From: Ascidiella aspersa
Taxonomy: Eukaryota
Length of the DNA stretch: 64,000 nt
Reading direction: 5' to 3'
Assembly (NCBI GenBank): GCA_963924565.1
Contig: OZ004614.1
Span: forward strand, 3,968,001 to 4,032,000
Shown: in pieces, positions 1 to 39,371 of the stretch
Position numbering within the stretch: the first letter of the stretch is position 1
How the letters are laid out: the number at the start of each line of letters is the position of its first letter
Notes under the pieces: generated by a model
Seen by the model: the letters and a program-made list of their open reading frames with translations, nothing else
What the model was told of the DNA's origin: nothing
The model's database searches: none
Made by a program: the position numbers and the translations under genes

Positions 1-36
1 ACACGAACCCTTGCTAAAGTTGTTTCTTTAACTTAC

Positions 37-500
37 TTCCAACGCAGTTTCCGCTGATCAGAATGTCGAAAAGTATCTCGGCTGTTCTCGTGAATTCGTC
101 CTCGTGCAAATGAAAGGGTAGATTTAGATCGGCGAGCAGCCTCATTTGATCGAGCGACATGCACTGAAATATAGCATGTGTTTTAAAAGTAGTAAACAAT
201 ATTCTGTAATCTATTTGTAAATACTTCGCTGATCGTTAGACGATTAAGCTATCATTACAAAACGCCTTCACTACTGCATTCATATGCTCAGAATGTAAAA
301 CTCACGAAGAGTCTCACTACTCACGTGAATGCATTCGATTTCACACGTGAAACGCTCCTGCAACTTGCTCGTGAGCGTGACGTAACTAGCCTCATCCACG
401 AAACCCTCGGTGCCCAACAGCTCCGTGAGGTGCGAGAAGCTGTCCTCGTGATCATGATCATGATCGTCATCGTGATCGTCACCTTGATCACCGACTACTT
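37..500 (-). CDS. Module 17 (partial): A 500-325, B 163-37; continues beyond the window
   Basis: Intact exons; the array is cut by the window edge. Confidence 0.83.
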
Positions 501-3500
501 CTGCAATATGACGCCCATGTGGTTCAATTGTAAAAGTTCAATAGAAAATTGTAAACAGCTTAAAATTACTGGAAGGTGGAAAGCTGGCACAAGCGGTGTT
601 TTTAGGTGTTTTTGAGTGAGGAACTTATATTCCAAAGTCAGAAAAAAACTTCTTGTTAAGGTAACAAACCAAATGTTTAAAATAGGTAATTTGTTAATTG
701 GAATTTGATTGCTAGTTAATAAAATAGTGAAAAAAATTGTGGTGTACAATGGTCACACTATATGCTAACACAATAAGCAAACTCAAAACTGAACGTCAAT
801 TCACAAATGTGCTTAAAAAGGAACCTCGAGCTTAAACGAACCTGAATTAGGTACATTTTGCGTTTCTACCCCGAAATGGCGGACGTACGACTTTTGAAGT
901 TGGTCTGTGGTCTGATAAACGCAGTGGCCCTCGAAAAAGTTGGCATGTAGTTGAAAAACGCGCTCATCGACTGTCCTTTCCGCCAGAGTTGAAGCATTAA
1001 AGCACTGCAATGAAGACAGATCGTTTATCGAATTAATGTTAGTCTCGGTGCCGACCGCTTTGGCATTCAGCAGCCTTGGGCATTAAAAAGAGCGCTAATT
1101 AACTATTGCATTTTTGTGGCTACCAATAGCTTTTACAAGGTTGGAAATGTCAGATCATAAGAATGGTAAGCTGGAGTAAATCTACGGCTTGCTGATGTGC
1201 TGAGTTATTTAAACGATCATTACAGGGCGATTATTTTTTGACATAAAAATGAGAAAGTTTGACATAAAAAATTTTAAATTTTGACCAATTTTAAAATTTT
1301 GACCTATAAGAAATACATTGATTTAAACAACATAATGTTGTTTGAAATACTGCATTCGAGTCTTGGCGTCCTCTGCAAGCTCCGTATATAACATATTGCT
1401 CTAATGAAGATAAAATACAGTTAAAATTTCGTTGCATATAACTTAAAGCTAATTTTGTTTGACAAAATGGTAACTGAACGACAATTTCAAAAAACTGACT
1501 AGAGTTTTTCTATTTCGCAAATGATTTTTGAGCATTATTAATCGATTTGACTACAAAACAATTTGACGAACTATGCCTAACGTGTAAATTTTAACAAAGA
1601 TTTTGACTTTTTTGACGAGTCAAAAAATAATCGCCCTAGTCTTAGTAGAAAACACGTCTACCCACCATCTTTGTGTCTTGCTCGTGTTCGTACTTTGGCG
1701 TCAACTTGGCGAGCAGCAGTTCGATTCCCGCCTCGGAAGAAAGGTCAAAAGACGCAAGTGAATCAGGCGAAACTAAGAACCAAACAAATAAGTAATGTTT
1801 AAGTAATATGTAGTAGAATTAAAAAGCCACTAAATATAATGGGAGCCCAAAACACTCTGGTGTTATTTCTTGCGTCCATATACATTACACGAACCCTTGC
1901 TAAAGTTGTTTCTTTAACTTACTTCCAACGCAGTTTCCGCTGACGAGAATGTCGAAAAGTATCTCGGCTGTTCTCGTGAATTCGTCCTCGTGCAAATGAA
2001 AGGGTAGATTTAGATCGGCGAGCAGCCTCATTTGATCGAGCGTCATGCACTGAAATATAGCATGTGTTTTAAAAGTAGTAAACAATATTCTGTAATCTAT
2101 TTGTAAATACTTCGCTGATTGTTAGACGATTAAGCTTTCATTACAAAACGCCTTCACTACCGCATTCATATGCTCAGAATGTAAAACTCACGAAGAGGCT
2201 CACTACTCACGTGAATGCATTCGATTTCACACGTGAAACGCTCCTGCAGCTTGCTCGTGAGCGTGACGTAACTAGCCTCATCCACGAAACCCTCGGTGCC
2301 CAACAGCTCCGTGAGGTGCGAGAAGCTGTCCTCGTGATCATGATGATGATCGTCATCGTGATCGTCACCTTGATCACCGACTACTTCTGCAATATGACGC
2401 CCGTTTGGTTCAATTGTAAATGTTCAATAGAAAATTGTAAACAGCTTAAAATTACTGGAAGGTGGAAAACTGGCACAAGCGGTGTTTTTAGGTGTTTTTG
2501 AGTGACGTACTTATATTCCAAAGTCAGAAAAAAATTCTTGTTAAGGTAACTAACCCAATGTTTTAAATAGGTAATTTGTTAATTGGAATTTGATTGCTAG
2601 TTAAAAAAAAACAGTGAAAAAAATTGTGGTGTACAATGGTTATTATATGCTAACACAATAAGCAAACTCAAAACTGAACGTCAATTCACAAATGCGCATC
2701 AAAAAGTAACCTCGAGCTTAAACGAACCTGAATTAGGTACATTTTGCGTTTCTACCCCGAAATGTCGGACGTACGACTTTTGAAGTTGGTCTGTGGTCTG
2801 ATAAACGCAGTGGCCCTCGAAAAAGTTGGCGTGTAGTTGAAAAACGCGCTCATCGACCGTCCTTTCCGCCAGAGTTGAAGCATTAAAGCACTGCAATGAA
2901 GACAGTTCGTTTATCGAATTAATGTTAGTCTCGGTGCCGACCGCTTTGGCATTCAGCAGCCTTGGGCATTAAAAAGAGCGCTAATTAACTATTGCATTTT
3001 TGTGACTACCACTAGCTTTGACAAGGTTGGAAATGTCAGATCATAAGAATGGTAAGCTGTAGTTAATCTACGGCTTGCTGATGTGCTGAGTTATTTAAAC
3101 GATCATAAGTAGGGCGATTATTTTTTGACATAAAAATGAGAAAGTTTGACATAAAAAATATTGAATTTTGACCAATTTTAAAATTTTGACCTATAAGAAA
3201 TACATTAATTTAAACAACATAATGTTGTTTGAAATACTGCATTAGTGTCTTGGCGTCTTCTGCAAGCTCCGTATATAACATATTGCTCTAATGAAGATGA
3301 AATACAGTTAAAATTTCGTTGAATATAACTTAAAGTTAATTTTGTTTGACAATATGGTAACTGAACGACAATTTCAAAAACTGACTAGAGTTTTTCTATT
3401 TCGCAAATGATTTTTGAGCATTATTAATCGATTTTGACTGCAAAACAATTTGACAAACTTTGCCTAACGTGTAAATTTTAACAAAGCTTTTGACTTTTTT

Positions 3501-6500
3501 AACGAGTCAAAAAATAATCGCCCTATAGTCTTAGTAGAAAACACGTCTACCCACCATCTTTGTGTCTTGCTCGTGTTCGTACTTTGGCGTCAACTTGGCG
3601 AGCAGCAGTTCGATTTCCGCCTCGGAAGAAAGGTCAAAAGACGCAACTGAATCAGGCGAAACTAAGAACCAAACAAATAAATAATGTTTAAGTAATATGT
3701 AGTAGAATTAAAAATCCACCAATTATAATGGGAGCCCAAAACACCCTGGTTTTAATTCTTGCGTCCATATACATTACACGAACCCTTGCTAAAGTTGTTT
3801 CTTCAACTTACTTCCAACGCAGTTTCCGCTGATCAGAATGTCGAAAAGTATCTCGGCTGTTCTCGTGAATTCGTCCTCGTGCAAATGAAAGGGTAGATTT
3901 AGATCGGCGAGCAGCCTCATTTGATCGAGAGACATGCACTGAAATATAGCATGTGTTTTAAAAGTAGTAAACAATATTCTGTAATCTATTTGTAATACTT
4001 CGCTGATTGTTAGACGATTAAGCTTTCATTACAAAACGCCTTCACTACCGCATTCACATGTTCAGAATGTAAAACTCACCAAGAGGCTCACTACTCACGT
4101 GAATGCATTCGATTTCACACGTGAAACGCTCCTGCAACTTGCTCGTGAGCGTGACGTAACTAGCCTCATCCACGAAACCCTCGGTGCCCAACAGCTCCGT
4201 GAGGTGCGAGAAGCTGTCCTCGTGACCATGATCATGATCGTCATCGTGATCGTCACCTTGATCAACGACTACTTCTGCAATATGACGCCGTTATGGTTCA
4301 ATTGTAAATGTTCAATAGAAAATTGTAAACAGCTTAAAATTACTGGAAGATGGAAAACTGGCACAAGCGGTGTTTTTAGGTGGTTTGAATGACGTACTTA
4401 TATTCCAAAGTCAGCAAAAAACTTCTTGTTAAGGTAATTAACCAAATGTTTAAAATAGGTCATTTTGTTAATTGGAATTTGATTGCTAGTTAAAAAAAAA
4501 ACAACAGTGAAACAAATTGTGGTGTACAATGGTCATTATATGCTAACACAAAAAGAAAACTCAAAACTGAACGTTAATTCACAAATGCGCATCAAAAAGT
4601 AACCTCGATCTTAAACTAACCTGAATTAGGTACATTTTGCGTTTCTACCCCGAAATGGCGGACGTTCGACTTTTGAAGTTGGTCTGTGGTCTGATAAACG
4701 CAGTGGCCCTCGAAAAAGTTGGCATGTAGTTGAAAAACGCGCTCATCGACTGTCCTTTCCGCCAGAGTTGAAGCATTAAAGCACTGCAATAAAACAGTTC
4801 GTTTATCGAATTAATGTTAGTCTCGGTGCCGACCGCTTTGGCAATCAGCAGCCTTGGGCATTAAAAAGAGCGCTAATTAACTATTGCATTTTTGTGGCTA
4901 CCAATAGCTTTGACAAGGTTGGAAATGTCAGATCATAAGAACGATAAGCTGGAGTTAATCTACGGCTTGCTGATGTGCTGAGTTATTTAAACGATCATAA
5001 GTAGGGCGATTATTTTTTGACATAAAAATGAGAAAGTTGACATAAAAAATGTTAAACTTTGACCAATTTTAAAATTTTGACCTATAAGAAATACATTGAT
5101 TTAAACAACATAATGTTGTTTGAAATACTGCATTAGTGTCTTGGCGTCCTCTGCAAGCTCCGTATATAACATATTGCTCTAATGAAGATAAAATAAAGTT
5201 AAAATTTTGTTGAATATAACTTAAAATTAATTTTGTTTGACAAAATGGTAACTGAACGACAATTTCAAAAAACTAACTAGAGTTTTTCTATTTCGCAAAT
5301 GATTTTTGAGCATTATTAATCGATTTTGACTACAAAACAATTTGACGAACTATACTTAACGTGCAAATTTTAACAAAGATTTTGACTTGTTTGACGAGTG
5401 AAAAAATAATCGCCCTATAGTCTTAGTAGAAAACACGTCTACCCACCATCTTTGTATCTTGCTCGTGTTCGTACTTTGGCGTCAACTTGGCGAGCAGCAG
5501 TTCGATTCCCGCCTCGGAAGAAAGGTCAAAAGACGCAACTGAATCAGGCGAAACTAAGAACCAAACAAATAAGTAATGTTTAAGTAATATGTAGTAGAAT
5601 TAAAAAGCCACTAAATATAATGGGAGCCCAAAACACCCTGCTGTTATTTCTTGCGTCCATATACATTACACGAACCCTTGCTAAAGTTGTTTCTTTAACT
5701 TACTTCCAACGCAGTTTCCGCTGATCAGAATGTCGAAAAGTATCTCGGCTGTTCTCGTGAATTCGTCCTCGTGCAAATGAAAGGGTAGATTTAGATCGGC
5801 GAGCAGCTTCATTTGATCGAGCGACATGCACTGAAATATAGCATGTGTTTTAAAACTAGTAAACAATATTCTGTAATCTATTTGTAAATATTTCGCTGAT
5901 TGTTAGACGATTAAGCTTTCATTACAAAACGCCTTCACTACCGCATTCATATGCTCAGAATGTAAAACTCACGAAGAGGCTCACTACTCACGTGAATGCA
6001 TTCGATTTCACACGTGAAACGCTCCTGCAACTTGCTCGTGAGCGTGACGTAACTAGCCTCATCCACGAAACCCTCGGTGCCCAACAGCTCCGTGAGGTGC
6101 GAGAAGCTGTCCTCGTGACCATGATCATGATCGTCATCGTGATCGTCACCTTGATCACCGACTACTTCTGCAATATGACGCCCGTTTGGTTCAATTGTAA
6201 ATGTTCAATAGAAAATTGTGAACAGCTTAAAGATACTGGAAGGTGGAAAACTGGCACAAGCGGTGTTTTTAGGTGTTTTGAAGGATGTACTTATATTCCA
6301 AAGTCAGAAAAAAACTTCTTGTTAAGGTAACTAACCAAATGTTTAAAATAGGTCATTTGTTAATTGGAATTTGATTTCTAGTTAAAAAAAAAACAGTGAA
6401 AAAAATTGTGGTGTACAATGGTCATTATATGCTAACACAATAAGCAAACTCAAAATTGAACGTCAATTTACAAATGCGCATCAAAAAGTAATCTCGAACT

Positions 6501-9500
6501 TAAACGAACCTGAATATGGTACATTTTGCGTTTCTACCCCGAAATGGCGGACGTTCGACTTTTGAAGTTGGTCTGTGGTCTGATAAACGCAGTGGCCCTC
6601 GAAAAAATTGGCGTGTAGTTGAAAAACGCGCTCATCGACCGTCCTTTCCGCCAGAGTTGAAGCATTGAAGCACTGCAATAAAACAGTTCGTTTATCGAAT
6701 TAATGTTAGTCTCGGTGCCGACCGCTTTGGCATTCAGCAGCCTTGGGCATTAAAAAGAGCGCTAATTAACTATTGCATTTTTGTGGCTACCACTAGCTTT
6801 TACAAGGTTGGAAATGTCAGATCATAAGACCGGTAAGCTGGTGTAAATCTACGGCTTGCTGATGTGCTGAGTTATTTAAACGATCACATGTAGGGCGATT
6901 ATTTTTTAAAATAAAAATGAGAAAGTTTGACATAAAAAATGTTAAATTTTGACCAATTTTAAAAATTTGACCTACAAGAAATACATTGATTTAAACAACA
7001 TAATGTTGTTTGAAATACTGCATTCGAGTCTTGGCGTCCTCTGCAAGCTCCGTATATAACATATTGCTCTAATGAAGATAAAATACAGTTAAAATTTCGT
7101 TGAATATAACTTAAAATTAATTTTGTTTGACAAAATGGTAACTGAACGACAATTTCAAAAAACTGACTAAAGTTTTTCTATTTCGCAAATGATTTTTGAG
7201 CATTATTAATCGATCTTGACTACAAAACAATTTGACAAACTTTGCCTAACGTGCAAATTTTAACAAAGATTTTGACTTTTTTGACGAGTCAAAAAATAAT
7301 CGCCCTAGTCTTAGTAGAAAACACGTCTACTCACCATCTTTGTGTCTTGCTCGTGTTCGTACTTTGGCGTCAACTTGGCGAGCAGCAGTTCGATTCCCGC
7401 CTCGGAAAAAAGGTCAAAAGACGCAACTGAATCAGGCGAAACTAAGAACCACACAAATAAATAATGTTTAAGTAATATGTAGTAGAATTAAAAAGCCACT
7501 AAATATAATGGGAGCCCAAAACACCCTTCTGTTATTTCTTGCGTCCATATACATTACACGAACCCTTGCTAAAGTTGTTTCTTCAACTTACTTCCAACGC
7601 AGTTTCCGCTGATCAGAATGTCGAAAAGTATCTCGGCTGTTCTCGTGAATTCCTCCTCGTGCAAATGAAAGGGTAGATTTAGATCGGCGAGCAGCTTCAT
7701 TTGATCGAGCGACATGCACTGAAATATAGCATGTGTTTTAAAAGTAGTAAACAATATTCTGTAATCTATTGGTAAATACTTCGCTGATTGTTACACGATT
7801 AAGCTTTCATTACAAAACACCTTCACTACCGCATTCATATGCTCAGAATGTAAAACTCACGAAGAGGCTCACTACTCACGTGAATGCATTCGATTTCACA
7901 CGTGAAACGCTCCTGCAACTTGCTCGTGAGCGTGACGTAACTAGCCTCATCCACGAAACCCTCGGTGCCCAACAGCTCCGTGAGGTGCGAGAAGCTGTCC
8001 TCGTGATCATGATGATGATCGTCATCGTGATCGTCACCTTGATCACCGACTACTTCTGCAATATGACGCCCGTTTGGTTCAATTGTAAAAGTTCAATAGA
8101 AAATTGTCAACAGCTTAAAATTACTGGAAGGTGGAAAGCTGGCACAAGCGGTGTTTTTAGGTGTTTTTGAGTGAGGAACTTATATTCCAAAGTCAGAAAA
8201 AAACTTCTTCTTAAGGTAACAAACCAAATGTTTAAAATAGGTAATTTGTTAATTGGAGTTTGATTGCTAGTTAATAAAATAGTGAAAAAAATTGTGGTGC
8301 ACAATGGTCACACTATATGCTAACACAATAAGCAAACTCAAAACTGAACGTCAATTCACAAATGCGCATCAAAAAGTAACCTCGAGCTTAAACGAACCTG
8401 AATTAGGTACATTTTGCGTTTCTACCCCGAAATGGCGGACGTACGACTTTTGAAGTTGGTCTGTGGTCTGATAAACGCAGTGGCCCTCGAAAAAGTTGGC
8501 ATGTAGTTGAAAAACGCGCTCATCGACTGTCCTTTCCGCCAGAGTTGAAGCATTGAAGCACTGCAATAAAACAGTTCGTTTATCGAATTAATGTTAGTCT
8601 CGGTGCCGACCGCTTTGGCATTCAGCAGCCTTGGGCATTAAAAAGAGCGCTAATTAACTATTACATTTTTGTGGCTACCACTAGCTTTTACAAGGTTGGA
8701 AATGTCAGATAATAAGAACGGTAAGCTGGAGTAAATCTACGGCTTGCTGATGTGCTGAGTTATTTAAACGATCATAAGTAGGGCGATTATTTTTTGAGAT
8801 AAAAATGAGAAAGATTGTTTTGTAGTCAAAAAGTCTTAGTAGAAAACACGTCTACCCACCATCTTTGTGCCTTGCTCGTGTTCGTACTTTGGCGTCAACT
8901 TGGCGAGCAGCAGTTCGATTCCCGCCTCGGAAGAAAGGTCAAAAGACGCAACTGAATCAGGCGAAACTAAGAACCAAACAAATAAATGATGTTTAAGTAA
9001 TATGTAGTAGAATTAAAAAGCCACTAAATATAATGGGAGCCAAAAACACCCTGGTGTTAATTCTTGCGTCCATATACATTGCACGAACCCTTGCTAAAGT
9101 TGTTTCTTTAACTTACTTCCAACGCAGTTTCCGCTGATCAGAATGTCGAAAAGTATCTCGGCTGTTCTCGTGAATTCGTCCTCGTGCAAATGAAAGGGTA
9201 GATTTAGATCGGCGAGCAGCTTCATTTGATCGAGCGACATGCACTGAAATATAGCATGTGTTTTAAAAGTAGTAAACAATATTCTGTAATATATTTGTAA
9301 ATACTTCGCTGATTGTTAGACGATTAAGCTTTCATTACAAAACGCCTTCACTACCGCATTCAAATGCTCAGAATGTAAAACTCACGAAGAGGCTCACTAC
9401 TCACGTGAATGCATTCGGTTTCACACGTGAAACGCTCCTGCAACTTGCTCGTGAGCGTGACGTAACTAGCCTCATCCACGAAACCCTCGGTGCCCAACAG

Positions 9501-24500: not shown

Positions 24501-27500
24501 AATTGTAAATGTTCAATAGAAAATTGTAAACAGCTTAAAATTACTGGAAGGTGGAAATCTGGCACAAGCGGTGTTTTTAGGTGTTTTTGAGTGAGGAACT
24601 TATATTCCAAAGTCAGAAAAAAACTTCTTCTTAAGGTAACAAACCAAATGTTTAAAATAGGTAATTGTGTTAATTGGAATTTGATTACTTGTTAATAAAC
24701 CAGTGAAAAAAATTGTGGTGTACAATGGTCATTATATGCTAACACAATAAGCAAACTCAAAACTGAACGTCAATTCACAAATGTGCATCAAAAAGTAACC
24801 TCGAGCTTAAACGAACCTGAATTAGGTACGTTTTGAGTTTCTACGCCGAAACGGCGGACGTTCGACTTTTGAAGTTGGTCTATGGTCTGATAAACGCAGT
24901 GGCCCTCGAAAAAATTGGCGTGTAGTTGAAAAACGCGCTCATCGACTGTCCTTTCCGCCAGAGTTGAAGCATTAAAGCACTGCAATAAAACATTTTGTTT
25001 ATCGAATTAATGTTAGTCTCGGTGCCGACCGCTTTGGCAATCAGCAGCCTTGGGCATTAAAAAGAGCGCTAATTAACTATTGCATTTTTGTGACTACCAC
25101 TAGCTTTTCCAAGGTTGGAAATGTCATATCATATGAACGGTAAGATGAAGTTAATCTACGGCTTGCGAATGTGCTGAGTTATTTAAACGATCATAAGTAG
25201 GGCGATTATTTTTTGACATAAAAATGAGAAAGTTTGACATAAAAAATGTTAAATTTTGACCAATTTTAAAATTTTGACCTATAAGAAATACATTGATTTA
25301 AACAACATAATGTTGTTTGAAATACTGCATTAGTGTCTTGGCGTCCTCTGCAAGCTCCGTATATAACATATTGCTCTAATGAAGATAAAATACAGTTAAA
25401 ATTTCGTTGAATATAACTTAAAATTAATTTTGTTTGACAAAATGGTAACTGAACGACAATTTCAAAAAACTGACCAGAGTTTTTTTATTTCGAAAATGAT
25501 TTTTGAGCATTATTAATCGATTTTGACTACAAAACAATTTGACAAACTTTGCCTAACGTATAAATTTTAACAAAGATTTTGACTTTTTTGACGAGTCACG
25601 TCTGCTCACCATCTTTGTATCTTGCTCGTGTTCATACTTTGGCGTCAATTTGGCGAGGAGCAGTTCGATTCCCGCCTCGGAAGAAAGGTCAAAAGACGCA
25701 ATTGAATCAGGCGAAACTAAGAACCAAACAAATAAATAATGTTTAAGTAATATGTAGTAGAATTAAAAAGACACTAAATATAATGGGAGCCCAAAACACC
25801 CTGGTGTTATTTCTTGCGTCCATATACATTACACGAACCCTTGCTAAAGTTGATTCTTTAACTTACTTCCAACGCAGTTTCCGCTGATGAGAATGTCGAA
25901 AAGTATCTCGGCTGTTCTCGTGAATTCGACCTCGTGCAAATGAAAGGGTAGATTTAGATCGGCGAGCAGCTTCATTTGATCGAGCGACATGCACTGAAAT
26001 ATAGCATGTGTTTTAAAAGTAGTAAACAATATTCTGTAATCTATTTGTAAATACTTCGCTGATTGTTAGACGATTAAGCTTTCATTACAAAACGACTTCA
26101 TTACCGCATTCATATTCTCAGAATGTAAAACTCACGAAGAGGCTCACTACTCACGTGAATGCAGTCGATTTCACACGTGAAACGCTCCTGCAATTTGCTC
26201 GTGAGCGTGACGTAACTAGCCTCATCCACGAAACCCTCGGTGCCCAACAGCTCCGTGAGGTGCGAGAAGCTGTCCTCGTGAATATGATCATGATCGTCAT
26301 CGTGATCGTCACCTTGATCACCGACTACTTCTGCAATATGACGCCCGTTTGATTCAATTGTAAATGTTCAATAGAAAATTGTAAACAGCTAAAAATTACT
26401 GGAAGGTGGAAAACTGGCACAAGCGGTGTTTTTAGGTGTTTTGAATGACGTACTTATATTCCAAAGTCAGAAAAAAACTTCTTGTTAAGGTAACAAACAA
26501 AATGTTTAAAATAGGTAATTTTGTTAATTGGAATTTGATTACTAGTTAATAAAACAGTGAAAAAAAATTGTGGTGTACAATGGTTATTATATGCTAACAC
26601 TATAAGCAAACTCAAAACTGAACGTCAATTCACAAATGCGCATCAAAAAGTAACCTCGAGCTTAAACGAACCTGAATTAGGTACATTTTGCGTTTCTACC
26701 CCGAAATGGCGGACGTTGGACTTTTGAAGTTGGTCTGTGGTCTGATAAACGCAGTGGCCCTCGAAAAAGTTGGCGTGTAGTTGAAAAACGCGCTCATCGA
26801 CTGTCCTTTCCGCCAGAGTTGAAGCATTAAAGCACTGCAATGAAGACAGTTCGTTTATCGAATTAATGTTAGTCTCGGTGCCGACCGCTTTGGCATTCAG
26901 CAGCCTTGGGCATTAAAAAGAGCGCTAATTAACTATTGCGTTTTTGTGGCTACCAATAGCTTTTACAAGGTTGGAAATGTCAGATCATAAGAACGGTAAG
27001 CTAGAGTTAATCTTCGGCTTGGTGATGTGCTGAGTTATTTAAACGATCATAAGTAGGGCGATTATTTTTTGACATAAAAATGAGAAAGTTTGACATAAAA
27101 AATGTTAAATTTTGACCAATTTTAATTTTTTAACCTATAAGAAAAACATTGATTTAAACAACATAATGTTGTTTGAAATACTGCATTAGTGTCTTGGCGT
27201 CCTCTGCAAGCTCCGTATATAACATATTGCTCTAATAAAGATAAAATACAGTTAAAATTTCGTTGAATATAACTTAAAATTAATTTTGTTTGACAAAATG
27301 GTAACTGAACGACAATTTCAAAAAACTGACTAGGTTTTTCTATTTCGCAAATGATTTTTGAGCATTATTAATCGATTTTGACTGCAAAACAATTTGACAA
27401 ACTTTACCTAACGTGTAAATTTTAACAAAGATTTTGATTTTTTGACGAGTGAAAAATAATCGCCATAGTCTTAGTAGAAAACACGTCTACCCACCATCTT

Positions 27501-30500
27501 TGTATCTTGCTCGTGTTCGTACTTTGGCGTCAACTTGGCGAGCAGCAGTTCGATTCCCGCCTCGGAAGAAAGGTCAAAAGACGCAACTAAATCAGGCGAA
27601 ACTAAGAACCAAACAAACAAATCATTTTCAAGTAATATGTAGTAGAATTAAAAAGCCACTAAATATAATGGGAGCCCAAAATACCCTGGTGTTATTTCTA
27701 GCGTCCATATACATTGCACGAACCCTTGCTAAAGTTGTTTCTTTAACTTACTTCCAACGCAGTTTCCGCTGATCAGAATGTCGAAAAGTATCTCGGCTGT
27801 TCTCGTGAATTCGTCCTCGTGCAAATGAAAGGGTAGATTTAGATCGGCGAGCAGCTTCATTTGATCGAGCGACATGCACTGAAATATAGCATGTGTTTTA
27901 AAAGTAGTAAACAATATTCTGTAATCTATTTGTAAATACTTCGCTGATTGTTAGACGATTAAGCTTTCATTACAAACGCCTTCACTACCGCATTCATATG
28001 CTCAGAATGTAAAACTCACGAAGAGGCTCACTACTCACGTGAATGCATTCGATTTCACACGTGAAACGCTCCTGCAGCTTGCTCGTGAGCGTGACGTAAC
28101 TAGCCTCATCCACGAAACCCTCGGTGCCCAACAGCTCCGTGAGGTGCGAGAAGCTGTCCTCGTGATCATGATCATGATCGTCATCGTGATCGTCACCTTG
28201 ATCACCGACTACTTCTGCAATATGACGCCCGTTTGGTTCAATTGTAAATGTTCAATAGAAAATTGTAAACAGCCAAAAATTACTGGAAGGTGGAAAACTG
28301 GCACAAGCGGTGTTTTCAGGTGTTTTGAATGACGTACTCATATTCCAAAGTCAGAAAAAAACTTCTTGTTAAGGTAACAAACCAAATGTTTAAAATAGGT
28401 AATTTTGTTAATTGGAATTTGATTGCTAGTTAAAAAAAAAACAGTGAAAAAATTGTGGTGTACAATGGTCATTATATGCTAACACAATAAGCAAACTCAA
28501 AACTAAACGTCAATTCACAATTCGCATCAAAAAGTAACCTCGAGCTTAAACGAACCTGAATTAGGTACATTTTGCGTTTCTACCCCGAAATGGCGGACGT
28601 ACGACTTTTGAAGTTGGTCTGTGGTCTGATAAACGCAGTGGCCCTCGAAAAAGTTGGCGTGTAGTTGAAAAACGCGCTCATCGACTGTCCTTTCCGCCAG
28701 AGTTGAAGCATTAAAGCACTGCAATAAAACAGTTCGTTTATCGAATTAATGTTAATCTCGGTGCCGACCGCTTTGGCATTCAGCAGCCTCGTGCACTAAA
28801 CAGAGCGCTAATTAACTATTGCATTTTTGTGGCTACCACTAGCTTTTACAAGGTTGGAAATGTCAGATCATAAGAACGGTAAGCTGAAGTTAATCTACGG
28901 CTTGCTGATGTGCTGAGTTATTTAAACGATCATAAGTAGGGCGATTATTTTTTGACATAAAAATGAGAAAGTTTGACATAAAAAATGTTAAATTTTGACG
29001 AATTTTAAAATTTTGACCTATAAGAAATACATTGATTTAAACAACATAATGTTGTTTGAAATACTGCATTTGTGTCTTGGCGTCCTCTGCAAGCTCCGTA
29101 TATAACATATCGCTCTAATGAAGATAAATACAGTTAAAATTTCGTTGAATATAACTTAAAATTTATTTTGTTTGACAAAATGGTAACTGAACGACAATTT
29201 CAAAAAAATGACTAGAGTTTTTCTACTTCTCAAATGATTTTTGAGCATTATTAATCGATTTTGACTACAAAACAATTTGACAAACTATACCTAACCTTTA
29301 AATTTCAACAAAGATTTTGACTTTTTAGACGAGTGAAAAAATAATCGCCCTAGTCTTACTAGAAAACACGTCTACCCACCATCTTTGTATCTTGCTCGTG
29401 TTCGTACTTTGGCGTCAACTTGACAAGCAGCAGTTCGATTCCCGCCTCGGAAGAAAGGTCAAAAGACGCAACTGAATCAGGCGAAACTAAGAACCAAACA
29501 AATAAATAATGTTTAAGTAATATGTAGTAGAATTAAAAAGCCACTAATTAAAATGGGAGCCAAAAACACCCTGGTTTTAATTCTTGCGTCCATAATAATT
29601 TCACGAACCCTTGCTAAAGGTATTATAAGAATATCAAAGCCCATACAGAAGTAGGTGTCATTTTGGACGTTTCGAATAACTCTGTTGAAAATGAATAAAG
29701 AGTTATTCGAAACGTCCAAAATGATACCTACTTCTGTATGGGCTTTGATATTCTTATTACGTCTTACTACAACTTCCAACCATTATGCCCCAAACTTGCT
29801 AAAGTTGTTTCTTTAACTTACTTCCAACGCAGTTTCCGCTGATCAGAATGTCGAAAAGTATCTCGGCTGTTCTCGTGAATTCGTCCTCGTGCAAATGAAA
29901 GGGTAGATTTAGATCGGCGAGCAGCTTCATTTGATCGAGCGACATGCACTGAAATAAAATGGAGATGATGTTTTAAAAGTAGTAAACAATATTCTGTAAT
30001 CTATTTGTAAATACTTCGCTGATTGTTAGACGATTAAGCTTTCATTACAAAACGCCTTCACTACCGCATACATATGCTCAGAATGTAAAACTCACGAAGA
30101 GGCTCACTACTCACGTGAATGCATTCGATTTTACACGTGAAACGCTCCTGCAACTTGTTCGTGAGCGTGACGTAACTAGCCTCATCCACGAAACCGTCGG
30201 TGCCCAACAGCTCCGTGAGGTGCGTGAAGCTGTCTTCGTGATCGTGATCGTGATCATGATCGTCACTTTGATTATCGACTACCTCTGCAATATAAAGATT
30301 ATTGACTACCTCTGCCCTTTTAGTTTATTTGAAAACGTTCATTAGAAAAATAGAGTTAGTTTATATAGCTGACACGGTCAGACCCTAATGCTCAGTTATC
30401 ACTTAACAATTTTGTTTAGTTTTGTTCTAGTTGTATTCTGGGTATTGATTTGACATAATGTCTCGCCTAAAATATTAGTTTCTGTCGCAGTTTCGACTTG

Positions 30501-33500
30501 CACAATTTTTTATTGTACCTTTCTGCCTTTGAATAAGTTCGCCCCAAGGTGCTACATTTCCACCCTTATGTGTGCAGTGGAACCCCAACCTGTGTCATAA
30601 CGCCTTTTGAAATCTATAGACTGCGGTTGGCCTCATTACTAGACTTTGCTCGCTTGGTAATGTCGCAAAACTATACCCGAATTATTTATTTAAGATAAAT
30701 TTTAAGTAGATTGTCGCTCATTCTCTCAGTCGCTCAGTTAATTTAAAGAGAATTAACGGGAGAACGGGAAACAAGCGCAAGCAAGCAACTCTCACCAATA
30801 GAAGAGAAATATATGACTGGTATATTTGAGAATTTGTGCAAGCCTGAATTTACCGACCTTGTTTGCAAACCTAAAAACCAATGCCATTAACCTATGATTG
30901 TCAACGTTTTCAAGACCCAATATTTGCCAATGTAACCCAACTTGCGTCATATAGCCTTGAAGATTCAAGAGGGTCTCACAGCCTTAGACTTTGTTCGTCT
31001 GGCGATGTCGCAACATTTGTCAAATCTGTTTATGTTAAATATATTATGAGTAGAATATGATCAAACTTTTGGTCGCTTAGTTTATTAAAAGAGAATAAAG
31101 AGGAGAACTGGAAATATGCGCAAGCCAGTCGCACGCATCGCCATTATTTAAAAGAGAACTAGATGGCTGGCATGTTTAAAGAGTAGTTGCATAAGACTGA
31201 GTTTGCAGAAGTTATTAACCCATGATTGCCCGCGTTTCCAAGAACCCTGTTTGTCAATGTAACCCAACCCGCGTCATATAGCCTTGAGAATACGAGAGGG
31301 TCTCACAGCCCTAGACTTTGTTCGTCTGTCGATGTCGCAACATTTTCCAAACACGTTTATTAAAGTTAATTTTTGTTAAATAGATTTTCGCTCATTCGCT
31401 TGGTCGCTCAGTTCATTAAAAGAAAATTAACGGGAGACCGGAAAACATGGGCAAGCGAGCAACTCACATCATCAATAGTTAAAGAGAACTAGATTGGTGA
31501 CGTACTTAAAGAGTAGTTGCGCAATCCTGAATTTTCCCACGTCAGTTACCGATGGTGTCCCCTATTTTTAAGACCCTATGTTTGCAAATGTTACCCAACT
31601 TGCGCTATACAGTCCTGCGGAATTTATAGAGTCCGATTGCCTTGATTAATGGACTTTTTTCAACATTCTCCAAATTTCTTCATGCAAGATATGCTTTGAG
31701 TTTATTCGCGATAAAACTGTCAGTCGATCAGTTGATTAAAAGAGAATATACGGGATGACGGAAAACATGCGTAATCGAGCGACCCACAACACCAATAGTT
31801 AAAAGAGAACTAGATAGATGATATTTTTGAAAAGTAGTTGCGCAAGCCTAAAACCGGTGCCATTAACCCATGATTGTCCGCGTTTCCAAGAACTGATGTA
31901 GAAATATGATCTGAGTACAATATGAACAAACCTTTGGTCGCTCGGTTAATTAAAAGAGAATAAAGAGGAGAACTGGAAATATGCGCAAGCCAGTCGCACG
32001 CATCGCCATTAGTTAAAAGAGAACTAGATTGCTGGCATGTTTAAGAGTAGTTGCGCAAGTCTGAGTTTGCCGACCTCGGTCGTCTCATTTCGAGCCCCAT
32101 GTTTGCCATTGTAACCCAACCTACGTCATACAGTCATGCGGACTCAAGAGGGTCGCACAGCCTTTACAACTAGACTTTGTTCGCTTGATGATGTCGCAAC
32201 ATTTTCGAGCCATTTATTTAAGATATGCCTTGAGTATATTCGTAATCAGACTGTTGGTCGCTCAGTTTTTTAAAAGAGAATTAACACGAGCTCGAAAAAC
32301 ACGCGCAAGCAATCAAATCACATCACCAATAGTTAAAAGAGAACTAGATTGCTGGCATGTTTAAATAGTAGTTGCGCAAGCATGAAACCGGTGTCATTAA
32401 TCAATGATTGTCCGCGTTTCCAAGAACTTATGTTTGCCAGTGTAACCCAACCTGCATCATACAGCCTTGAAAATTCGAGAGGGTTTCACAGCCCTAGACT
32501 TTGTTCGTCTGGCTATATCGCAACATTTTCCAAACACATTTATTAAAGGTACATTTTTAAGTAGATTGTCGCTCATTCGCTTGGTCGATCAGTTCATTAA
32601 ATGAGAATTAACACGAGCTCGGAAAACACGCGCAAGCAATCAAATCACATCACCAATAGTTTAAAGAAAACTAGATTGTTAATGAGTAGTTGCGCAAACC
32701 TAAATTTACCGACTTTGGTCGTCTCATTCCCCATGTTTGACAAAATAACCCAACCTACGTCATACAGTCGTGCGGACTCAAGAGGGTCGCACAGCCTTTA
32801 CAACTAAATTTTGTTCGCTTAATGATGTCGCAATATTTTCCTAACCATTTTATTTTAAATATGTTTTGGGTATCGAAATCAACTTGTCAGTCGCTTAGTT
32901 CATTAAAAGAGAATAAACAGGAGGACAGAAAACTTGCGCAAGCGGCAACTCACATCACCAAATAGTTAAAAGAGAACTAGATGACTGGCCTGTTTAAAGA
33001 GTAGTTGCGCAAGCATAAGGCGGGTGTTATTAACCCATAACCATTTCCAAGAACCCATGTTTGCCAAAGTAACCCAATTGGCGTCATACAGTCTTGCGAA
33101 ATCTAGATTGCACCATTGCCTTTATTACTAGCTTCTTTATTATAGGCTTTGTTCAACATTTTCCAAATCTACTTATTGAAAATATCGAAAAAATATACAT
33201 TTAAAGAGTAGTTGATCAAGTCTGAGTTTACAAAATTAGTCACACTGATGTTCCCTCATTTAGACCCTTATGTTCTAGTGGACACCCAACTTACGACATT
33301 AAGCCTTGGGAAATCTAGAGTGCTTAATTGCCTTTATTACTAGACTGTGTTCGCTTAGCGATGTCGCAATGATTTCCAAACCCATTTATTTAAAATATAT
33401 TTTAAGTAGAATGTTGCTCTCAGTCGCTTAGTTCATTAAAAGAAACTAAACGGGAGGACCGGAAATATGCGCAAGCGAGCAACTCACTTTACTAATAGTT

Positions 33501-35217
33501 AGAAGAGAACTAGATGTCTGACATACAAGAGTTGCGCAAGCCTAAATTAACGATCTCGGTGCTCACATTTCCAAGAACCCATGTTTGCCAGTGTAACCCA
33601 ACCTACGTCATACAGTCGTGCAGCATTTAGCGAGTGGGGTTGCCTTGATAACTAGACTTTGTTCAACATTTTTCAAATTTATTTATTTAAAATATGCTTC
33701 GAGTAGATTCGCAATCAAACTGTCGGTCGCTCAGTTCTTTAAAAGAGAATAAACAAGAGTACCGGACACATGCGAAATCGAGCGACGTTCGAGTGTCACG
33801 CATCACCCAAACAGTTAAAAGAGAACTAGATGGCTGGCATATTTAAAGAGTAGTTGCGCAAGTCTGAATTTTCCGCCCTCGGTCATCCCATCCCCAGTAA
33901 CCGGGTTTGTATAATTATGTAACCCTAACTGACGCCATTCAGCCAATTTTTCTAACATGTTCAAGGGGTTTGTCGCTCATTCTATTGTTTCTTTTGTAGG
34001 ATATTCTGTTTTTTTTTAAAGAATATTACGGTAGGGATAAACTGTCACGAGCAGTGTTTTTTAAAGTTTCTTAAAGGACCGAAACTGTATTTCAAATTTC
34101 ATCAACGGTCTCTGCTTGACGGCCTGTCACTGACCGGACGTCGCACTCAAGTTAATTAGTATTTATTGTCAGAATGGCCGTGTGAACGCCAACACTGGGC
34201 TCAATCTGTAGCACAGCGGCTAGCAAGTGCGCTAGCTCGCTTGCTCATAAAACCAACCGCTGTTTACCTAACAACGCCCAAAACCAGACTGCCGTGGTTC
34301 TTTAGCTTCAACAGTTGCAAAAACTAAGTAATTGCCCTTAAATATTAAAACAAAAGTGGTCATATGATGAAAACCCAAAAGTAGAAAGGCGGCAGAACAA
34401 ATCAAATGAGGTGAAGTAAATTAAAAAACGACAAAGTGAAATAAAGCAAAAAAAATATAATTTTGCATTACACACACCCGGAATCTGGGGTAGACTGAGC
34501 GAAACATTGCGTTCGTTGCACAGTAAATCCTTTACAGCGCCAATACGCCAAGCAACATTTCAAATGAACCTAAAGACGACAGTAAGAATAATCTATTTAA
34601 CCTGGAAAAATCCGCGCATTTCGTCTAGTTACTTATAGTAACTTTTAAATGGGCAAACGATAAGGCACTGACCAGGCGATGTTTCGCGCTTGACAGCGAC
34701 ATGCAAGAATTGTGTCTAGTTATATATACCAGTGGTTCCCAACACGTTTTTTAGGCGAACCATTTCGAAAAAAAAAAATTTTGGTATAATCTTGCAACCC
34801 AAGCAAATACAAAATTGCGTTGCAAACAAACTGTACTACAAAAGCAGTTACCTTTTCCGAAAATAATGTGTATATTAATTTACTAATGAGATAGTTGTGC
34901 TCGCTTGCTCTCAGTGAGTTTTAAAATCGAGGCGTTATTCTGCTTGAGCATAGAGTCACGCATGTCAGCTTTAACTTTCAGCCGGTTTCACCGTTTAGTT
35001 TTCATATTTTGTGATTATGATTTCCAGTTTTGTGAAAAGATACAATATGCCTGAAAAACAAGCGACCCCCAAAAATAATCAGGCGACCCATGCGTTGGGA
35101 ACCGCTGATATATACCACTAAATGAAGAAGGCACAACTTACCCACTGTTCTTCCACTGGTGATGCATAACATCAGAAAAGTACAAAAAAGCAAACGCTTT
35201 GTAGACAAAAACATCAT
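37..35217 (-). CDS. ZIP-ectodomain tandem-repeat protein: signal exon plus 16 full and 1 partial four-exon modules; at least 3180 aa, 3' end outside the window
   Basis: 67 exons with canonical splice sites and matching phases. Exon lengths A 176 (170 in module 1), B 127, C 107, D 163 match ZIP exons 2-5. No stop or frameshift seen; 9541 coding nt in the window. Confidence 0.85.
842..2386 (-). CDS. Module 16: A 2386-2211, B 2049-1923, C 1772-1666, D 1004-842
   Basis: Intact exons, 573 nt. Confidence 0.83.
1225..1636. mobile_element. ~412-bp MITE in the C-D intron of every unit (also e.g. 28939-29350; truncated in four units)
   Basis: TIRs GGGCGATTATTTTTTGAC ... GTCAAAAAATAATCGCCC, flanked by TA in most copies; no coding capacity. 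Confidence 0.75.
2728..4274 (-). CDS. Module 15: A 4274-4099, B 3938-3812, C 3661-3555, D 2890-2728
   Basis: Intact exons, 573 nt. Confidence 0.83.
4621..6167 (-). CDS. Module 14: A 6167-5992, B 5830-5704, C 5553-5447, D 4783-4621
   Basis: Intact exons; D donor is gttagt. Confidence 0.83.
6510..8055 (-). CDS. Module 13: A 8055-7880, B 7718-7592, C 7441-7335, D 6672-6510
   Basis: Intact exons, 573 nt. Confidence 0.83.
8398..9580 (-). CDS. Module 12: A 9580-9405, B 9243-9117, C 8966-8860, D 8560-8398
   Basis: Intact exons; ~363-bp deletion confined to the C-D intron. Confidence 0.83.
9923..11468 (-). CDS. Module 11: A 11468-11293, B 11131-11005, C 10854-10748, D 10085-9923
   Basis: Intact exons; first Cys of D changed to Trp. 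Confidence 0.83.
11811..13356 (-). CDS. Module 10: A 13356-13181, B 13019-12893, C 12742-12636, D 11973-11811
   Basis: Intact exons, 573 nt. Confidence 0.83.
13699..14881 (-). CDS. Module 9: A 14881-14706, B 14544-14418, C 14267-14161, D 13861-13699
   Basis: Intact exons; ~363-bp deletion confined to the C-D intron. Confidence 0.83.
15223..16767 (-). CDS. Module 8: A 16767-16592, B 16430-16304, C 16153-16047, D 15385-15223
   Basis: Intact exons, 573 nt. Confidence 0.83.
17113..18657 (-). CDS. Module 7: A 18657-18482, B 18320-18194, C 18043-17937, D 17275-17113
   Basis: Intact exons; first Cys of D changed to Trp. Confidence 0.83.
19003..20517 (-). CDS. Module 6: A 20517-20342, B 20180-20054, C 19903-19797, D 19165-19003
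   Basis: Intact exons; D donor is gttagt. Confidence 0.83.
20859..22589 (-). CDS. Module 5: A 22589-22414, B 22252-22126, C 21790-21684, D 21021-20859
   Basis: Intact exons; 185 bp of extra sequence in the B-C intron. Confidence 0.83.
21924..22108. mobile_element. Foldback (palindromic) MITE-like element, 185 bp, in the module 5 B-C intron
   Basis: AAGAATATCAAAGCCCATACAGAAGTAGGT...ACCTACTTCTGTATAGGCTTTGATATTCTT; same family as the copies in ZIP introns. Confidence 0.8.
22930..24475 (-). CDS. Module 4: A 24475-24300, B 24138-24012, C 23861-23755, D 23092-22930
   Basis: Intact exons, 573 nt. Confidence 0.83.
24817..26330 (-). CDS. Module 3: A 26330-26155, B 25993-25867, C 25716-25610, D 24979-24817
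   Basis: Intact exons, 573 nt. Confidence 0.83.
26672..28214 (-). CDS. Module 2: A 28214-28039, B 27878-27752, C 27601-27495, D 26834-26672
   Basis: Intact exons, 573 nt. Confidence 0.83.
28556..30284 (-). CDS. Repeat module 1: A 30284-30115, B 29948-29822, C 29486-29380, D 28718-28556
   Basis: GT-AG exons; A is 170 nt, as in ZIP exon 2. Confidence 0.85.
29620..29804. mobile_element. Foldback MITE-like element, 185 bp, in the module 1 B-C intron
   Basis: Long inverted repeat bounded by the direct repeat CTTGCTAAAG. Confidence 0.8.
30560..33940. repeat. Degenerate ~330-bp tandem repeat (about 10 copies) in intron 1 of the repeat gene
   Basis: Recurring blocks GTAACCCAAC, AAAAGAGAACTAGAT, GAGTAGTTGCGCAAG, GTCGCTCAGTT, with many indels. 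Confidence 0.85.
34730..35107. mobile_element. hAT-type MITE, 378 bp
   Basis: TIR CAGTGGTTCCCAAC ... GTTGGGAACCGCTG, with a perfect 8-bp TSD ATATATAC. Confidence 0.88.
35142..35217 (-). CDS. Signal-peptide exon of the repeat gene, MMFLSTKRLLFCTFLMLCITSGRTV
   Basis: Same 76-nt length, phase-1 G|gtaagtt donor and LSTK-x-LL-x-C pattern as ZIP exon 1; AG acceptor at 35229. Confidence 0.85.
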
Positions 35218-36076: not shown

Positions 36077-36318
36077 TTTTAGCTTGGCGCAGCAAAAAAA
36101 TCAAAATTTTAGCTTGGCGCAGCAAAAAAAAATCAAAATTTTGGCTTTGCGCAGCATGAAAATCGAAATTTTGGCTTTGCGCAGCATGAAAATCAAAATT
36201 TTGGCTTGGCTCAGCAAAAAAAATCAAAATTTTAGCTTGGCGCAGCAAAAAAATCAAAATTTTAGCTTGGCGCAGCACAAAAATCAAAATTTTAGTTCGG
36301 CGCAGCAAAAAAATCAAA
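36077..36318. repeat. ~30-bp minisatellite, about 8 copies
   Basis: Unit TTTAGCTTGGCGCAGCAAAAAAATCAAAAT. Confidence 0.93.
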
Positions 36319-39300: not shown

Positions 39301-39371
39301 AGATATAGGGTCAATTAGCGAAATTAGTTTAGTAAATACTTGGGTACACTATGCACGGATCTGTAATGTAG

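Follow-up and report, generated by a model that had tools for sequence, protein, structure and literature searches.

The window analyzed here, a stretch of 64,000 nucleotides from Ascidiella aspersa (contig OZ004614.1, positions 3,968,001 to 4,032,000), harbors a complete ZIP gene and part of a predicted second one, both on the minus strand. The complete gene, hereafter the parent, spans 40064..59638. Its model and translation comprise 14 exons and 682 aa, laid out as a signal peptide, one ectodomain (exons 2-5), a His loop, a PAL exon and eight TM helices, and it shares 55% identity with ZIP12 of Phallusia mammillata. Exons 2-5 (56431-56262, 54845-54719, 53780-53674 and 51978-51816, minus strand) are the source of the module that is repeated in the second gene, hereafter the giant. 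The two genes are separated, from the parent stop codon to the giant ATG, by a 4.8-kb spacer (35218..40063), presumably the promoter region of the giant gene. A 30-nt tandem repeat lies inside this spacer at 36077-36318.

Exon 1 of the giant gene (35142..35217, minus strand) was read directly: the ATG stands at 35217, 25 codons plus 1 nt follow, and the donor GT occupies 35141-35140. The encoded signal peptide has a basic n-region, a hydrophobic core and a small-residue c-region, and it is 49% identical in amino acids to that of its paralog, exon 1 of the parent. Intron 1 (30285..35141, minus strand; 4,857 nt, with GT at 35141 and AG at 30286-30285) leads from this exon to module 1. Internal repeats occur inside the same intron.

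Beyond intron 1 lies what looks like a satellite with a period of 1.9 kb. The reading of exons in the window and in the DNA below it indicates, however, that this "satellite" is the middle part of a predicted ~55-kb gene. A unit read directly carries exons A (500..325), B (163..37), C (1772..1666) and D (1004..842) on the minus strand, all with AG/GT flanks. Module 1 (28556..30284, minus strand) is composed of A 30284-30115 (170 nt), B 29948-29822, C 29486-29380 and D 28718-28556, and it is the 5' unit that diverges most, sharing ~95% identity with the core. Modules 2-16 (842..28214, minus strand) carry exons A/B/C/D of 176/127/107/163 nt, with A exons starting at 28214, 26330, 24475, 22589, 20517, 18657, 16767 and 14881 (modules 2-9) and at 13356, 11468, 9580, 8055, 6167, 4274 and 2386 (modules 10-16), and with introns of ~161, 150, 662 (299 in units 9 and 12) and 341 nt. 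For the DNA below the window we use two further coordinate systems, in which L001 position equals window position + 10000 (contig 3958001-3968000) and L002 position equals window position + 20000 (contig 3948001-3958000). Module 17 straddles the window edge, with exons A (500-325) and B (163-37) at window 1..500 and exons C and D at L001 9886-8975; modules 18-21 follow at L001 8633-1340, all on the minus strand. The array thereby extends 8.7 kb beyond the window start.

The splicing of the modules, as read in silico, is regular. All 84 module exons are flanked by AG and GT and are free of stops and frameshifts, and their lengths are constant except for a 6-nt in-frame deletion in two A exons. 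The D-to-A junction falls in phase 1, and the module therefore measures 573 nt, or 191 codons. In its consensus, the module contains 6 Cys and 12 His; protein identity among the modules is 90-99%, and modules 7 and 11 have each lost one Cys of the six. Exon D occurs exactly 22 times in the whole genome, 21 times in the array and once in the parent.

Most of what the earlier note had read from the letters is borne out by this analysis. The apparent satellite is indeed a coding array with in-frame splicing from module to module, preceded by a signal-peptide exon of its own; the four minus-strand exons of 176/127/107/163 nt per 1.9-kb unit are kept throughout; the 191-aa module does have 6 Cys and about 12 His; and the junctions 35142->30284 and 842->500 are exact as exon boundaries. 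Amino acid identity to parent exons 2-5, put earlier at 86/67/58/81% (~75% overall), amounts to 84.5/66.7/57.1/81.5% (74.6% overall). The count of at least 17 modules holds as far as the window goes, with 17 in-register tandem copies, but the array runs on past the window edge to a total of 21.

Downstream of the last module, on the same strand and in frame, come paralogs of every remaining ZIP exon (His loop, PAL, TM1-8 and stop), namely a (Asp-His)n exon of 1,004 nt (L001 922-1 plus L002 10000-9919), the PAL exon (L002 9655-9478) and seven TM exons, of which the first four lie at L002 8411-8242, 6698-6546, 6208-6095 and 5251-5149 and the last three at L002 3569-3417, 2127-1940 and 791-651 (stop). 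The ZIP body of the giant is complete, with a PAL helix pair, eight TM helices and a stop codon. Since the last module splices in frame into these exons, the modules make up the ectodomain at the N-terminus of a second, complete ZIP paralog. By direct reading, the giant gene extends over ~54.6 kb (contig positions 3948651-4003217, minus strand) and its model counts 94 exons, a CDS of 14,301 nt and 4,766 aa, with a terminal stop only and with AG/GT at 186 of 186 splice sites. The predicted protein contains 390 His, which corrects the previous figure of at least 3,180 aa with roughly 200 His. A secreted metal sponge devoid of a transporter, as formerly envisaged beside the importer, was rejected because the reading frame continues beyond the repeats, through the exons for the His loop, the PAL helices and the eight TM helices, to its only stop. 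The presence of the ZIP body instead makes the giant gene a predicted second importer with a giant ectodomain, in which capture and uptake would therefore share one chain.

The assignment to the ZIP family was examined by searching Pfam Zip (PF02535) exon by exon, and the Zip domain is found over the eight TM helices of both genes. Matches were obtained at E-values of 4.6e-7, 5.8e-3, 3.4e-14 and 3.8e-12 for the parent exons and of 1.5e-6, 8.9e-3, 1.4e-9, 5e-12 and 0.061 for those of the giant, values near or below the whole-protein cut-off for single exons, as expected because exons are only pieces of the domain. The giant matches are collinear on the profile (6-59, 67-100, 175-221, 223-290 and 294-322). 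The parent displays the LIV-1 metal-site motif, with HNFGDG in TM4 and HELPHEFGD in TM5, whereas the giant, with CNFGDG and HEVPRGFGD, departs from its strict form (HNF..DG in TM4, HEXPHEXGD in TM5) and so represents a diverged descendant of a LIV-1 gene. At the PAL motif site, both genes read CPGFLQQ versus SPALLQQ in ZIP4, keeping the Pro and the LQQ context; elsewhere this site reads TAF or PSF in Phallusia and PSL in sea urchin. Pfam EF-hand_Zip gives single-exon matches on the PAL exon (E 0.056 for the parent and 0.0065 for the giant), and a local PCD profile matches the parent with E 2e-17.

The ectodomain was searched with Pfam and with local profiles. Single module exons have no match in Pfam, and PF18292 (ZIP4_domain) was not detected by Pfam in the ascidian proteins P0001 and P0003; an HRD-only profile gives E ~3e-4, and a full-ectodomain profile of non-ascidian ZIP4/ZIP12 proteins is collinear with parent residues 54-325 (E 6e-24). 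The proteins retrieved as homologs of the ascidian ectodomain contain Pfam ZIP4_domain (PF18292), EF-hand_Zip and Zip, the closest database protein being the ZIP12 of Phallusia mammillata. All 17 ectodomain homologs retrieved are proteins of 549-732 aa with a single ectodomain. In line with the earlier remark that no poly-ectodomain ZIP derivative is known, no multi-ectodomain ZIP was found in protein libraries of 1.8 and 5.8 billion proteins, nor in the literature searched, and the protein libraries searched held no protein from the source species. Likewise, the exon-D open frame gave no homolog candidate among proteins of 49-155 aa, and the TM4-5 exons of both genes had no match among PDB sequences. 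An AlphaFold2 model of P0001, built on a 16-sequence alignment, has a mean pLDDT of 51.7, with the ectodomain below 55. Two further matches were set aside: the sub-threshold FAM180 matches to P0001 residues 50-235 in the protein atlas (0.76-0.78) were taken as chance, and P0002, a bacterial repeat protein matched in a representative protein search, as spurious.

The units of the array differ from one another in ways that bear on the assembly. Spacing among the 17 window copies is mostly 1855-1893 nt, with two units of 1525 nt and three of ~2030-2075 nt, and core units are 95-100% identical. An array of ~40 kb made of 1.9-kb units at 95-99% identity is hard to assemble and its copy number comes from one assembly only, so that the number or order of units could be wrong through over-expansion or mis-joining of a shorter array. 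We regard such an artefact as very improbable, however, given that every unit bears private substitutions and indels, that a 363-nt dispersed-repeat insertion is missing from two units and extra insertions are present in three, that divergence is graded toward the array edges (93%, then 82-87%, then 80-85%), and that neither the window nor the 40 kb directly below it contains runs of N. With more or fewer units, the giant would still be the same kind of gene.

Variation among the units also reveals the imprint of selection. Diversity (pi) is 0.0245 in exons versus 0.0447 in introns, i.e., about half, and pN/pS is 0.33, an estimate that concerted evolution can blur, with a pS of 0.052 near the intron value. 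Variant alleles comprise 32 synonymous and 44 non-synonymous changes (binomial p = 3.5e-5; p = 0.017 in the same test with a generous 30% synonymous expectation), and no stop is observed in the module exons versus 2.8 expected. Small indels among units amount to 53 events in introns, 48 of them of frameshifting size, and to only two in exons, both of 6 nt. Introns would predict ~13-21 frameshifting exon indels, and none is observed; with low-complexity contexts removed, 12.7 are expected and the count is still 0 (P ~3e-6). Judged by these patterns, purifying selection has kept the giant ZIP intact.

The same data weigh on a second alternative, in which the gene is expressed but its modules are used variably, yielding proteins with one or a few ectodomains and leaving the array as a length-variable or cassette region. 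The D-to-A, exon 1-to-A and D-to-His-exon junctions all lie in phase 1, and therefore anything from 1 to 21 modules could be included in frame; in addition, splice sites that are nearly identical 21 times over would make skipping mechanistically easy. Nevertheless, a choice among modules 90-99% identical in protein would generate almost no diversity, and variable use would imply weak selection on each module, which sits poorly with the lack of frameshifts in 84 exons. We thus consider this alternative unlikely.

Comparison between the two genes raises the question of a paralog that is silent or recently dead, in which a young amplification of exons 2-5 would have stayed intact through its youth and gene conversion. 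The parent-giant alignment is confined to exons (76-87% identity in nucleotides), the introns no longer aligning, and dS is 0.57, dN 0.14 and omega 0.24, for body and module alike. In the ZIP body, the giant has accumulated 34 lineage-specific changes versus 10 in the parent, evolving 3.4 times faster (p = 3e-4). This acceleration, together with two to three changed invariant metal-site residues in the canonical HEXPHEXGD and HNF motifs, also fits a relaxation toward gene loss, and the Cys lost in two modules points the same way. Against it, synonymous and intron divergence reaches ~4.5-5% among core units and ~16-19% for edge units, the intron indels have no frame-shifting counterpart in the exons, pN/pS and the omega to the parent argue for constraint, and the 94 exons and 186 splice sites show no lesion. 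A dead gene is, in our view, an improbable explanation.

With a probability of about 0.6, we favor the reading in which the array forms the coding interior of a genuine gene of ~54.6 kb and 94 exons, a tandem paralog of the adjacent zinc importer of LIV-1 subgroup I (ZIP4/ZIP12-type). Behind it stand the observed gene structure and homology, an uninterrupted frame with canonical splice sites, and purifying selection acting on all of the modules. On this favored reading, the giant ZIP gene would be transcribed, with all modules joined in one mRNA, and its product would bind and transport metal.

As to its origin, the whole ZIP gene may have been duplicated first, as suggested by the dS of ~0.57 and the unalignable introns, and exons 2-5 would then have been multiplied by unequal crossing-over to 21 in-frame copies, which the shared phase 1 of the two flanking introns makes workable. 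The His-rich-loop exon would have grown as a 60-nt minisatellite to 334 residues. The predicted product begins with the signal peptide and 21 modules, each consisting of an Asp/His tract, a helix-rich 6-Cys ectodomain and the first PAL-domain helix, and, after a (Asp-His)n loop containing 122 His and a PAL-type helix pair, ends in an 8-TM ZIP core. It would be a membrane protein with a strongly acidic, His-rich ectodomain of 4,427 residues, which may be a low-affinity, high-capacity binder of divalent metal and raise the metal's local concentration over the pore.

Genes of giant size are known to arise by amplification of phase-compatible exon blocks, as in mucins, the super-repeats of titin and nebulin and the kringle IV arrays of apolipoprotein(a); in arrays of symmetric-phase exon blocks, unequal crossing-over drives amplification, the center is homogenized and the edges diverge, as proposed for the giant ZIP array. 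To our knowledge, none of them amplifies an accessory ectodomain of a solute carrier. Closer to the present case, tunicate multimodular metallothioneins have a binding capacity that scales with repeat number, BscMT1 of Botryllus schlosseri binding 36 Zn with nine 12-Cys repeats (PMC8476144). BscMT1 and OdiMT2 of Oikopleura resemble the giant ZIP in the lineage-specific tandem amplification of a metal-binding module within one gene, but they are unrelated to it in fold and chemistry, being small cytosolic proteins with Cys-thiolate clusters and units of ~40 aa, whereas the giant ZIP has a His/Asp-rich extracellular domain fused to a transporter, with units of 191 aa over four exons. Beside them, the giant ZIP would stand as a second, independent tunicate case of a metal-handling protein enlarged by modular amplification.

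The giant ZIP shares with ZIP4 and ZIP12 (SLC39A4 and SLC39A12) the signal peptide, a putative helix-rich domain with conserved Cys at the N-terminus, a probable PAL-type domain split by a His-rich loop and the 8-TM Zip core, in the same order, the ectodomain being collinear with those of echinoderm, hemichordate, fish and cnidarian ZIP4/ZIP12. It differs from them in having 21 putative helix-rich modules versus one, a His loop of 334 aa with 122 His versus a few tens of residues, CNF versus HNF in TM4, HEVPRGFGD versus HEXPHEXGD in TM5, and PGF at the PAL motif. Mutations in the helix-rich domain of ZIP4/ZIP12 cause acrodermatitis enteropathica, and the PAL-type helix pair is the dimerization element in ZIP4. 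Deletion of the HRD cuts the Vmax of hZIP4 by 50-60%, and the ZIP4 PCD bears a disordered His-rich loop (PMC4915132). A helix-rich domain multiplied 21-fold under purifying selection suggests that the domain is useful in itself and, together with the 122-His loop, hints at a role in capturing or sensing metal on the outer side of the membrane.

The transport site of the giant carries a His-to-Cys change in TM4 and His-to-Arg and Glu-to-Gly changes in TM5. The changed residues align to BbZIP H177 and E211, a mapping obtained through P0001 as intermediate, and their hZIP4 equivalents are H507, H540 and E541 (PMC5573306). The hZIP4 mutant H540R remains active, though its apparent affinity is lower, and H507A shows only a moderate impairment (PMC5573306). 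The substitutions in the giant predict a transport site of lower affinity that is probably still conducting.

One further possibility, which we hold only tentatively, is that evolution has equipped this solute carrier with an antenna for harvesting metal, feeding a low-affinity pore or the neighboring parent ZIP. If so, a PAL-mediated dimer would display 42 helix-rich domains and ~750 extracellular His as a brush tens of nanometers long, concentrating trace metal from sea water or body fluid. The metal could be zinc or, in a metal-accumulating tunicate, another ion that binds His/Asp, for instance Ni, Cu, Co or vanadyl, and it would be passed to a deliberately low-affinity CNF/HEVPRGFGD pore or to the parent ZIP via heterodimerization. 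Transporter capacity set by ectodomain copy number would then have its first example from nature, and such a protein would amount to a natural experiment on what the ZIP4 helix-rich domain does. For binding and transport assays, the gene provides ready material in its single modules, its loop and its TM core with a natural equivalent of hZIP4 H540R. For genome annotation, the locus is a warning, since a 40-kb "satellite" is normally masked and a 4,766-aa gene is then lost or split.

Finally, one feature counts against the favored reading: modules are cut within the PAL-containing domain, where alpha10 gives way to alpha11, and twenty copies of alpha10 are therefore left without their partner helices. 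Within exon D, diversity among units peaks in the alpha10 part.

A repeat search of the window recovers a unit present 16-17 times in register, mostly at intervals of 1855-1893 nt, with two short (1525 nt) and three long (about 2030-2075 nt) outliers; copies in the array core are 95-100% identical. Each unit carries, on the minus strand, four open segments with AG and GT at their borders, exemplified by exon A (500-325, 176 nt), exon B (163-37, 127 nt), exon C (1772-1666, 107 nt) and exon D (1004-842, 163 nt). The last base of exon D supplies codon position one and the next exon A the remaining two bases; because D and A share this one split codon, the 573-nt unit is in frame throughout. Exon lengths and AG/GT flanks are constant in all copies, the sole length changes being two in-frame deletions of 6 nt that shorten the exon A Asp/His tract. 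The consensus module contains six Cys and 12 His, and the module peptides are 84.5, 66.7, 57.1 and 81.5% identical (74.6% overall) to those of the same-strand exons at 56431-51816 of the parent ZIP gene. The unit described in the earlier note was therefore reproduced in its coordinates, exon lengths, frame and identity to the parent. Its count of at least 17 modules holds as a lower bound, and rises to 21 once the flanking DNA is included, since the array extends 8.7 kb below the window start. Genome-wide, exon D has exactly 22 copies, 21 in the array and one in the parent, with stops in none.

The array lies within a larger predicted gene, the giant. Exon 1 (35217-35142) encodes a typical signal peptide, is a paralog of parent exon 1 and ends in the identical phase. 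On the 3' side of the last module, with strand and frame unchanged, follow a 1,004-nt His-loop exon, a PAL exon, all TM exons and a stop codon. The 1,004-nt exon is a homolog of the parent His-loop exon grown as a 60-nt minisatellite of 16.8 copies, and its 334-aa product holds 122 His and 108 Asp. Searched one exon at a time, this downstream series gives Pfam Zip matches whose profile positions are collinear. When the exons are joined computationally, the resulting model comprises 94 exons with 186 canonical splice sites, and its CDS of 14,301 nt encodes 4,766 aa (390 His) with a single terminal stop, over a gene span of 54.6 kb (positions 3948651-4003217 of contig OZ004614.1). The predicted ectodomain comprises 4,427 aa; acidic residues outnumber basic ones 928 to 240, and there are 129 Cys and 377 His. 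The giant is classed as a putative ZIP4/ZIP12-type transporter with a poly-ectodomain.

The parent (59638-40064) is a complete ZIP transporter gene of 14 exons and 682 aa. Its exons match Pfam Zip and encode HNFGDG in TM4 and HELPHEFGD in TM5, with CPGFLQQ where the PAL motif is expected and a short His-rich exon. Between parent and giant only exons are alignable (76-87% at the nucleotide level), introns matching solely at shared dispersed repeats. With dS 0.57 and dN 0.14, omega is 0.24-0.25, alike in the PAL and TM body and in the module, and no exon was damaged after the two genes diverged.

Among 18 core units, diversity is 0.0245 in exons versus 0.0447 in introns, and is similar in splice-proximal and deep intron. 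Synonymous diversity (0.052) is at the intron level and three times the non-synonymous value, giving a pN/pS of 0.33. The distinct variant alleles comprise 32 synonymous and 44 non-synonymous ones (binomial p = 3.5e-5 with the site proportion as expectation, 0.017 if a generous 30% is assumed), and 2.8 stop-creating variants were expected and none observed. In the 21-unit alignment, introns show 53 small indel events over about 1,310 positions, 48 of them frameshifting in size, versus two over 573 positions in exons, both of 6 nt; with indels in homopolymer or microsatellite context discarded, 12.7 exon frameshifts were expected and none observed (P about 3e-6). This pattern of indels and diversity is what a serial module arrangement predicts: the frame of each module is guarded like that of a whole gene because a frameshift in any module would truncate the downstream membrane domain. 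It is possible that modules are instead included variably among transcripts, as the one phase common to all junctions would permit, but such variation is hard to reconcile with the strong frame protection of every module.

In addition to being individually distinct, the units of the serial array diverge toward its edges. Identity to the core falls to about 93% in unit 19, 82-87% in unit 20 and 80-85% in unit 21 at the 3' edge, and to about 95% in unit 1 at the 5' edge, which is probably the classical signature of unequal crossing-over. Distinct units and graded edges also argue against assembly collapse or inflation. Copy number is known from one assembly (308.6 Mb in 75 contigs), which has no N runs in the window; an artefact reaching beyond copy number is unlikely.

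To map exons 2-5, they were aligned with the 4X82 structure of the ZIP4 ectodomain and with the Pfam boundaries in the homolog P0004. They encode an N-terminal Asp/His tract, the entire helix-rich domain and alpha10, the first helix of the PAL-containing domain, with alpha11 at the start of the His-loop exon; the limits of the repeat unit are thus fixed by intron positions, not by domain borders. As a consequence, 20 copies of alpha10 stand without partner helices. The alpha10 stretch, in the 3' third of exon D (e.g. 842-890), is the most variable coding segment (pi 0.067), and one of its codons reads Asn, Tyr or Phe depending on the module. The first codon of exon D, a conserved Cys, reads Trp in modules 7 and 11 (17275 and 10085), which leaves them five Cys. 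The four N-x-S/T sequons of parent exons 3-4 (NIT, NLT, NLT and NTT; 54845-54719, 53780-53674) are all missing from module exons B and C, and the only module sequon is NAS at the start of exon D.

When 1.84 billion representative proteins were searched with the exon D profile, the only true relative recovered was an ascidian protein of 670 aa, annotated as zinc transporter ZIP12 of Phallusia mammillata, with a single matching stretch; no representative with more than one such stretch was recovered. This ZIP12 shares 55% identity with the parent and 58% with the body of the giant. A search with its ectodomain led to another ZIP12 of Phallusia and to a ZIP4-like protein of a sea urchin; the sea-urchin protein in turn retrieved 13 further echinoderm, hemichordate, fish and cnidarian proteins, all of 549-732 aa. 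Twelve of the 13 match Pfam ZIP4_domain, EF-hand_Zip and Zip, the Holothuria ZIP4 being without a ZIP4_domain match; the ascidian proteins gave no match to ZIP4_domain. A profile of the non-ascidian ectodomains is collinear with parent residues 54-325 (E 6e-24), and one of the helix-rich part alone is weakly significant against the parent. The AlphaFold2 model of the Phallusia ZIP12 has an ectodomain pLDDT below 55, too uncertain for fold comparison. No ectodomain homolog longer than 732 aa was retrieved in the two ectodomain searches, whose upper length limits for candidates were about 1,170 and 1,260 aa, and the literature searched held no description of a ZIP with repeated ectodomains.

The transport site was compared in an alignment of the parent and the giant with both Phallusia ZIP12 proteins and the ZIP4-like one of the sea urchin. 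In the giant, Cys replaces His in TM4 (CNFGDG), and the TM5 motif reads HEVPRGFGD, with Arg-Gly in place of the His-Glu of its second half. Through the alignment of the 670-aa Phallusia ZIP12 (P0001) with the bacterial BbZIP, the changed positions are H177 and E211, equivalent to human ZIP4 H507 and H540, ligands of metal site M1 (PMC5573306). In human ZIP4, H540R has activity comparable to wild type with reduced apparent zinc affinity, H540A more than twofold activity and H507A moderate impairment only, and H507R, H536R and E537R are dead (PMC5573306). The giant retains the residues whose replacement by Arg abolishes transport, and those altered in it are the ones tuning affinity and release. 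With Phallusia as outgroup, its body has 34 lineage-specific replacements versus 10 in the parent (p = 3e-4), which implies relaxation or a shift of function. This faster evolution and the changed motif would fit a silent or dying paralog, with which neither the pN/pS value nor the indel contrast between exons and introns agrees. The second Phallusia ZIP12 (P0003) also has Cys for His in the TM4 HNF, with an unchanged HELPHEFGD; since it is so similar to P0001 (91-93% identical), its change looks independent of that in the giant.

Beyond the gene structure, homology and selection shown above, a model of metal capture can be proposed, inferential throughout. The ZIP4 ectodomain dimerizes via its PAL domain, which contains a disordered His-rich loop, and its helix-rich domains overhang the membrane, their removal halving Vmax (PMC4915132). 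By analogy, the giant product would form a dimer in the membrane. Above its pore would hang the (Asp-His)n loop of 334 residues, together with a string of 21 domains stabilised by disulfides, every one of them beginning with a further Asp/His tract. Loop and domains could bind many divalent ions weakly and retain them close to the mouth of a pore whose intrinsic affinity is lowered, combining capture and feeding in one polypeptide. In this regard, the multimodular tunicate metallothioneins, in which nine repeats bind 36 Zn, come closest as a functional precedent (PMC8476144).

A dispersed repeat about 420 nt long, with copies on many chromosomes at 72-82% identity, lies in the C-D intron of the units (e.g. 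about 1224-1640). Units 9 and 12 (1525 nt; about 13699-14161 and 8398-8860) lack 363 nt of it and are mutual nearest relatives (99.2% identity), which points to a probable recent three-unit duplication within the array. Units 1 and 5 carry an extra B-C intron insert of about 185 nt (29711-29812, 22025-22119), akin to short repeats that recur in intronic sequence of the parent and the giant (e.g. 45589-45672, 40426-40489 and 58695-58755). The 4.8-kb spacer from the parent stop codon to the giant ATG contains a 30-nt tandem repeat of eight copies with 89% matches (36077-36318). Finally, three similar open segments on the plus strand of the giant's 4.9-kb intron 1 (32065-32361, 32337-32543 and 32741-32962, within 32065-32962) indicate an internal repeat or transposon remnant.
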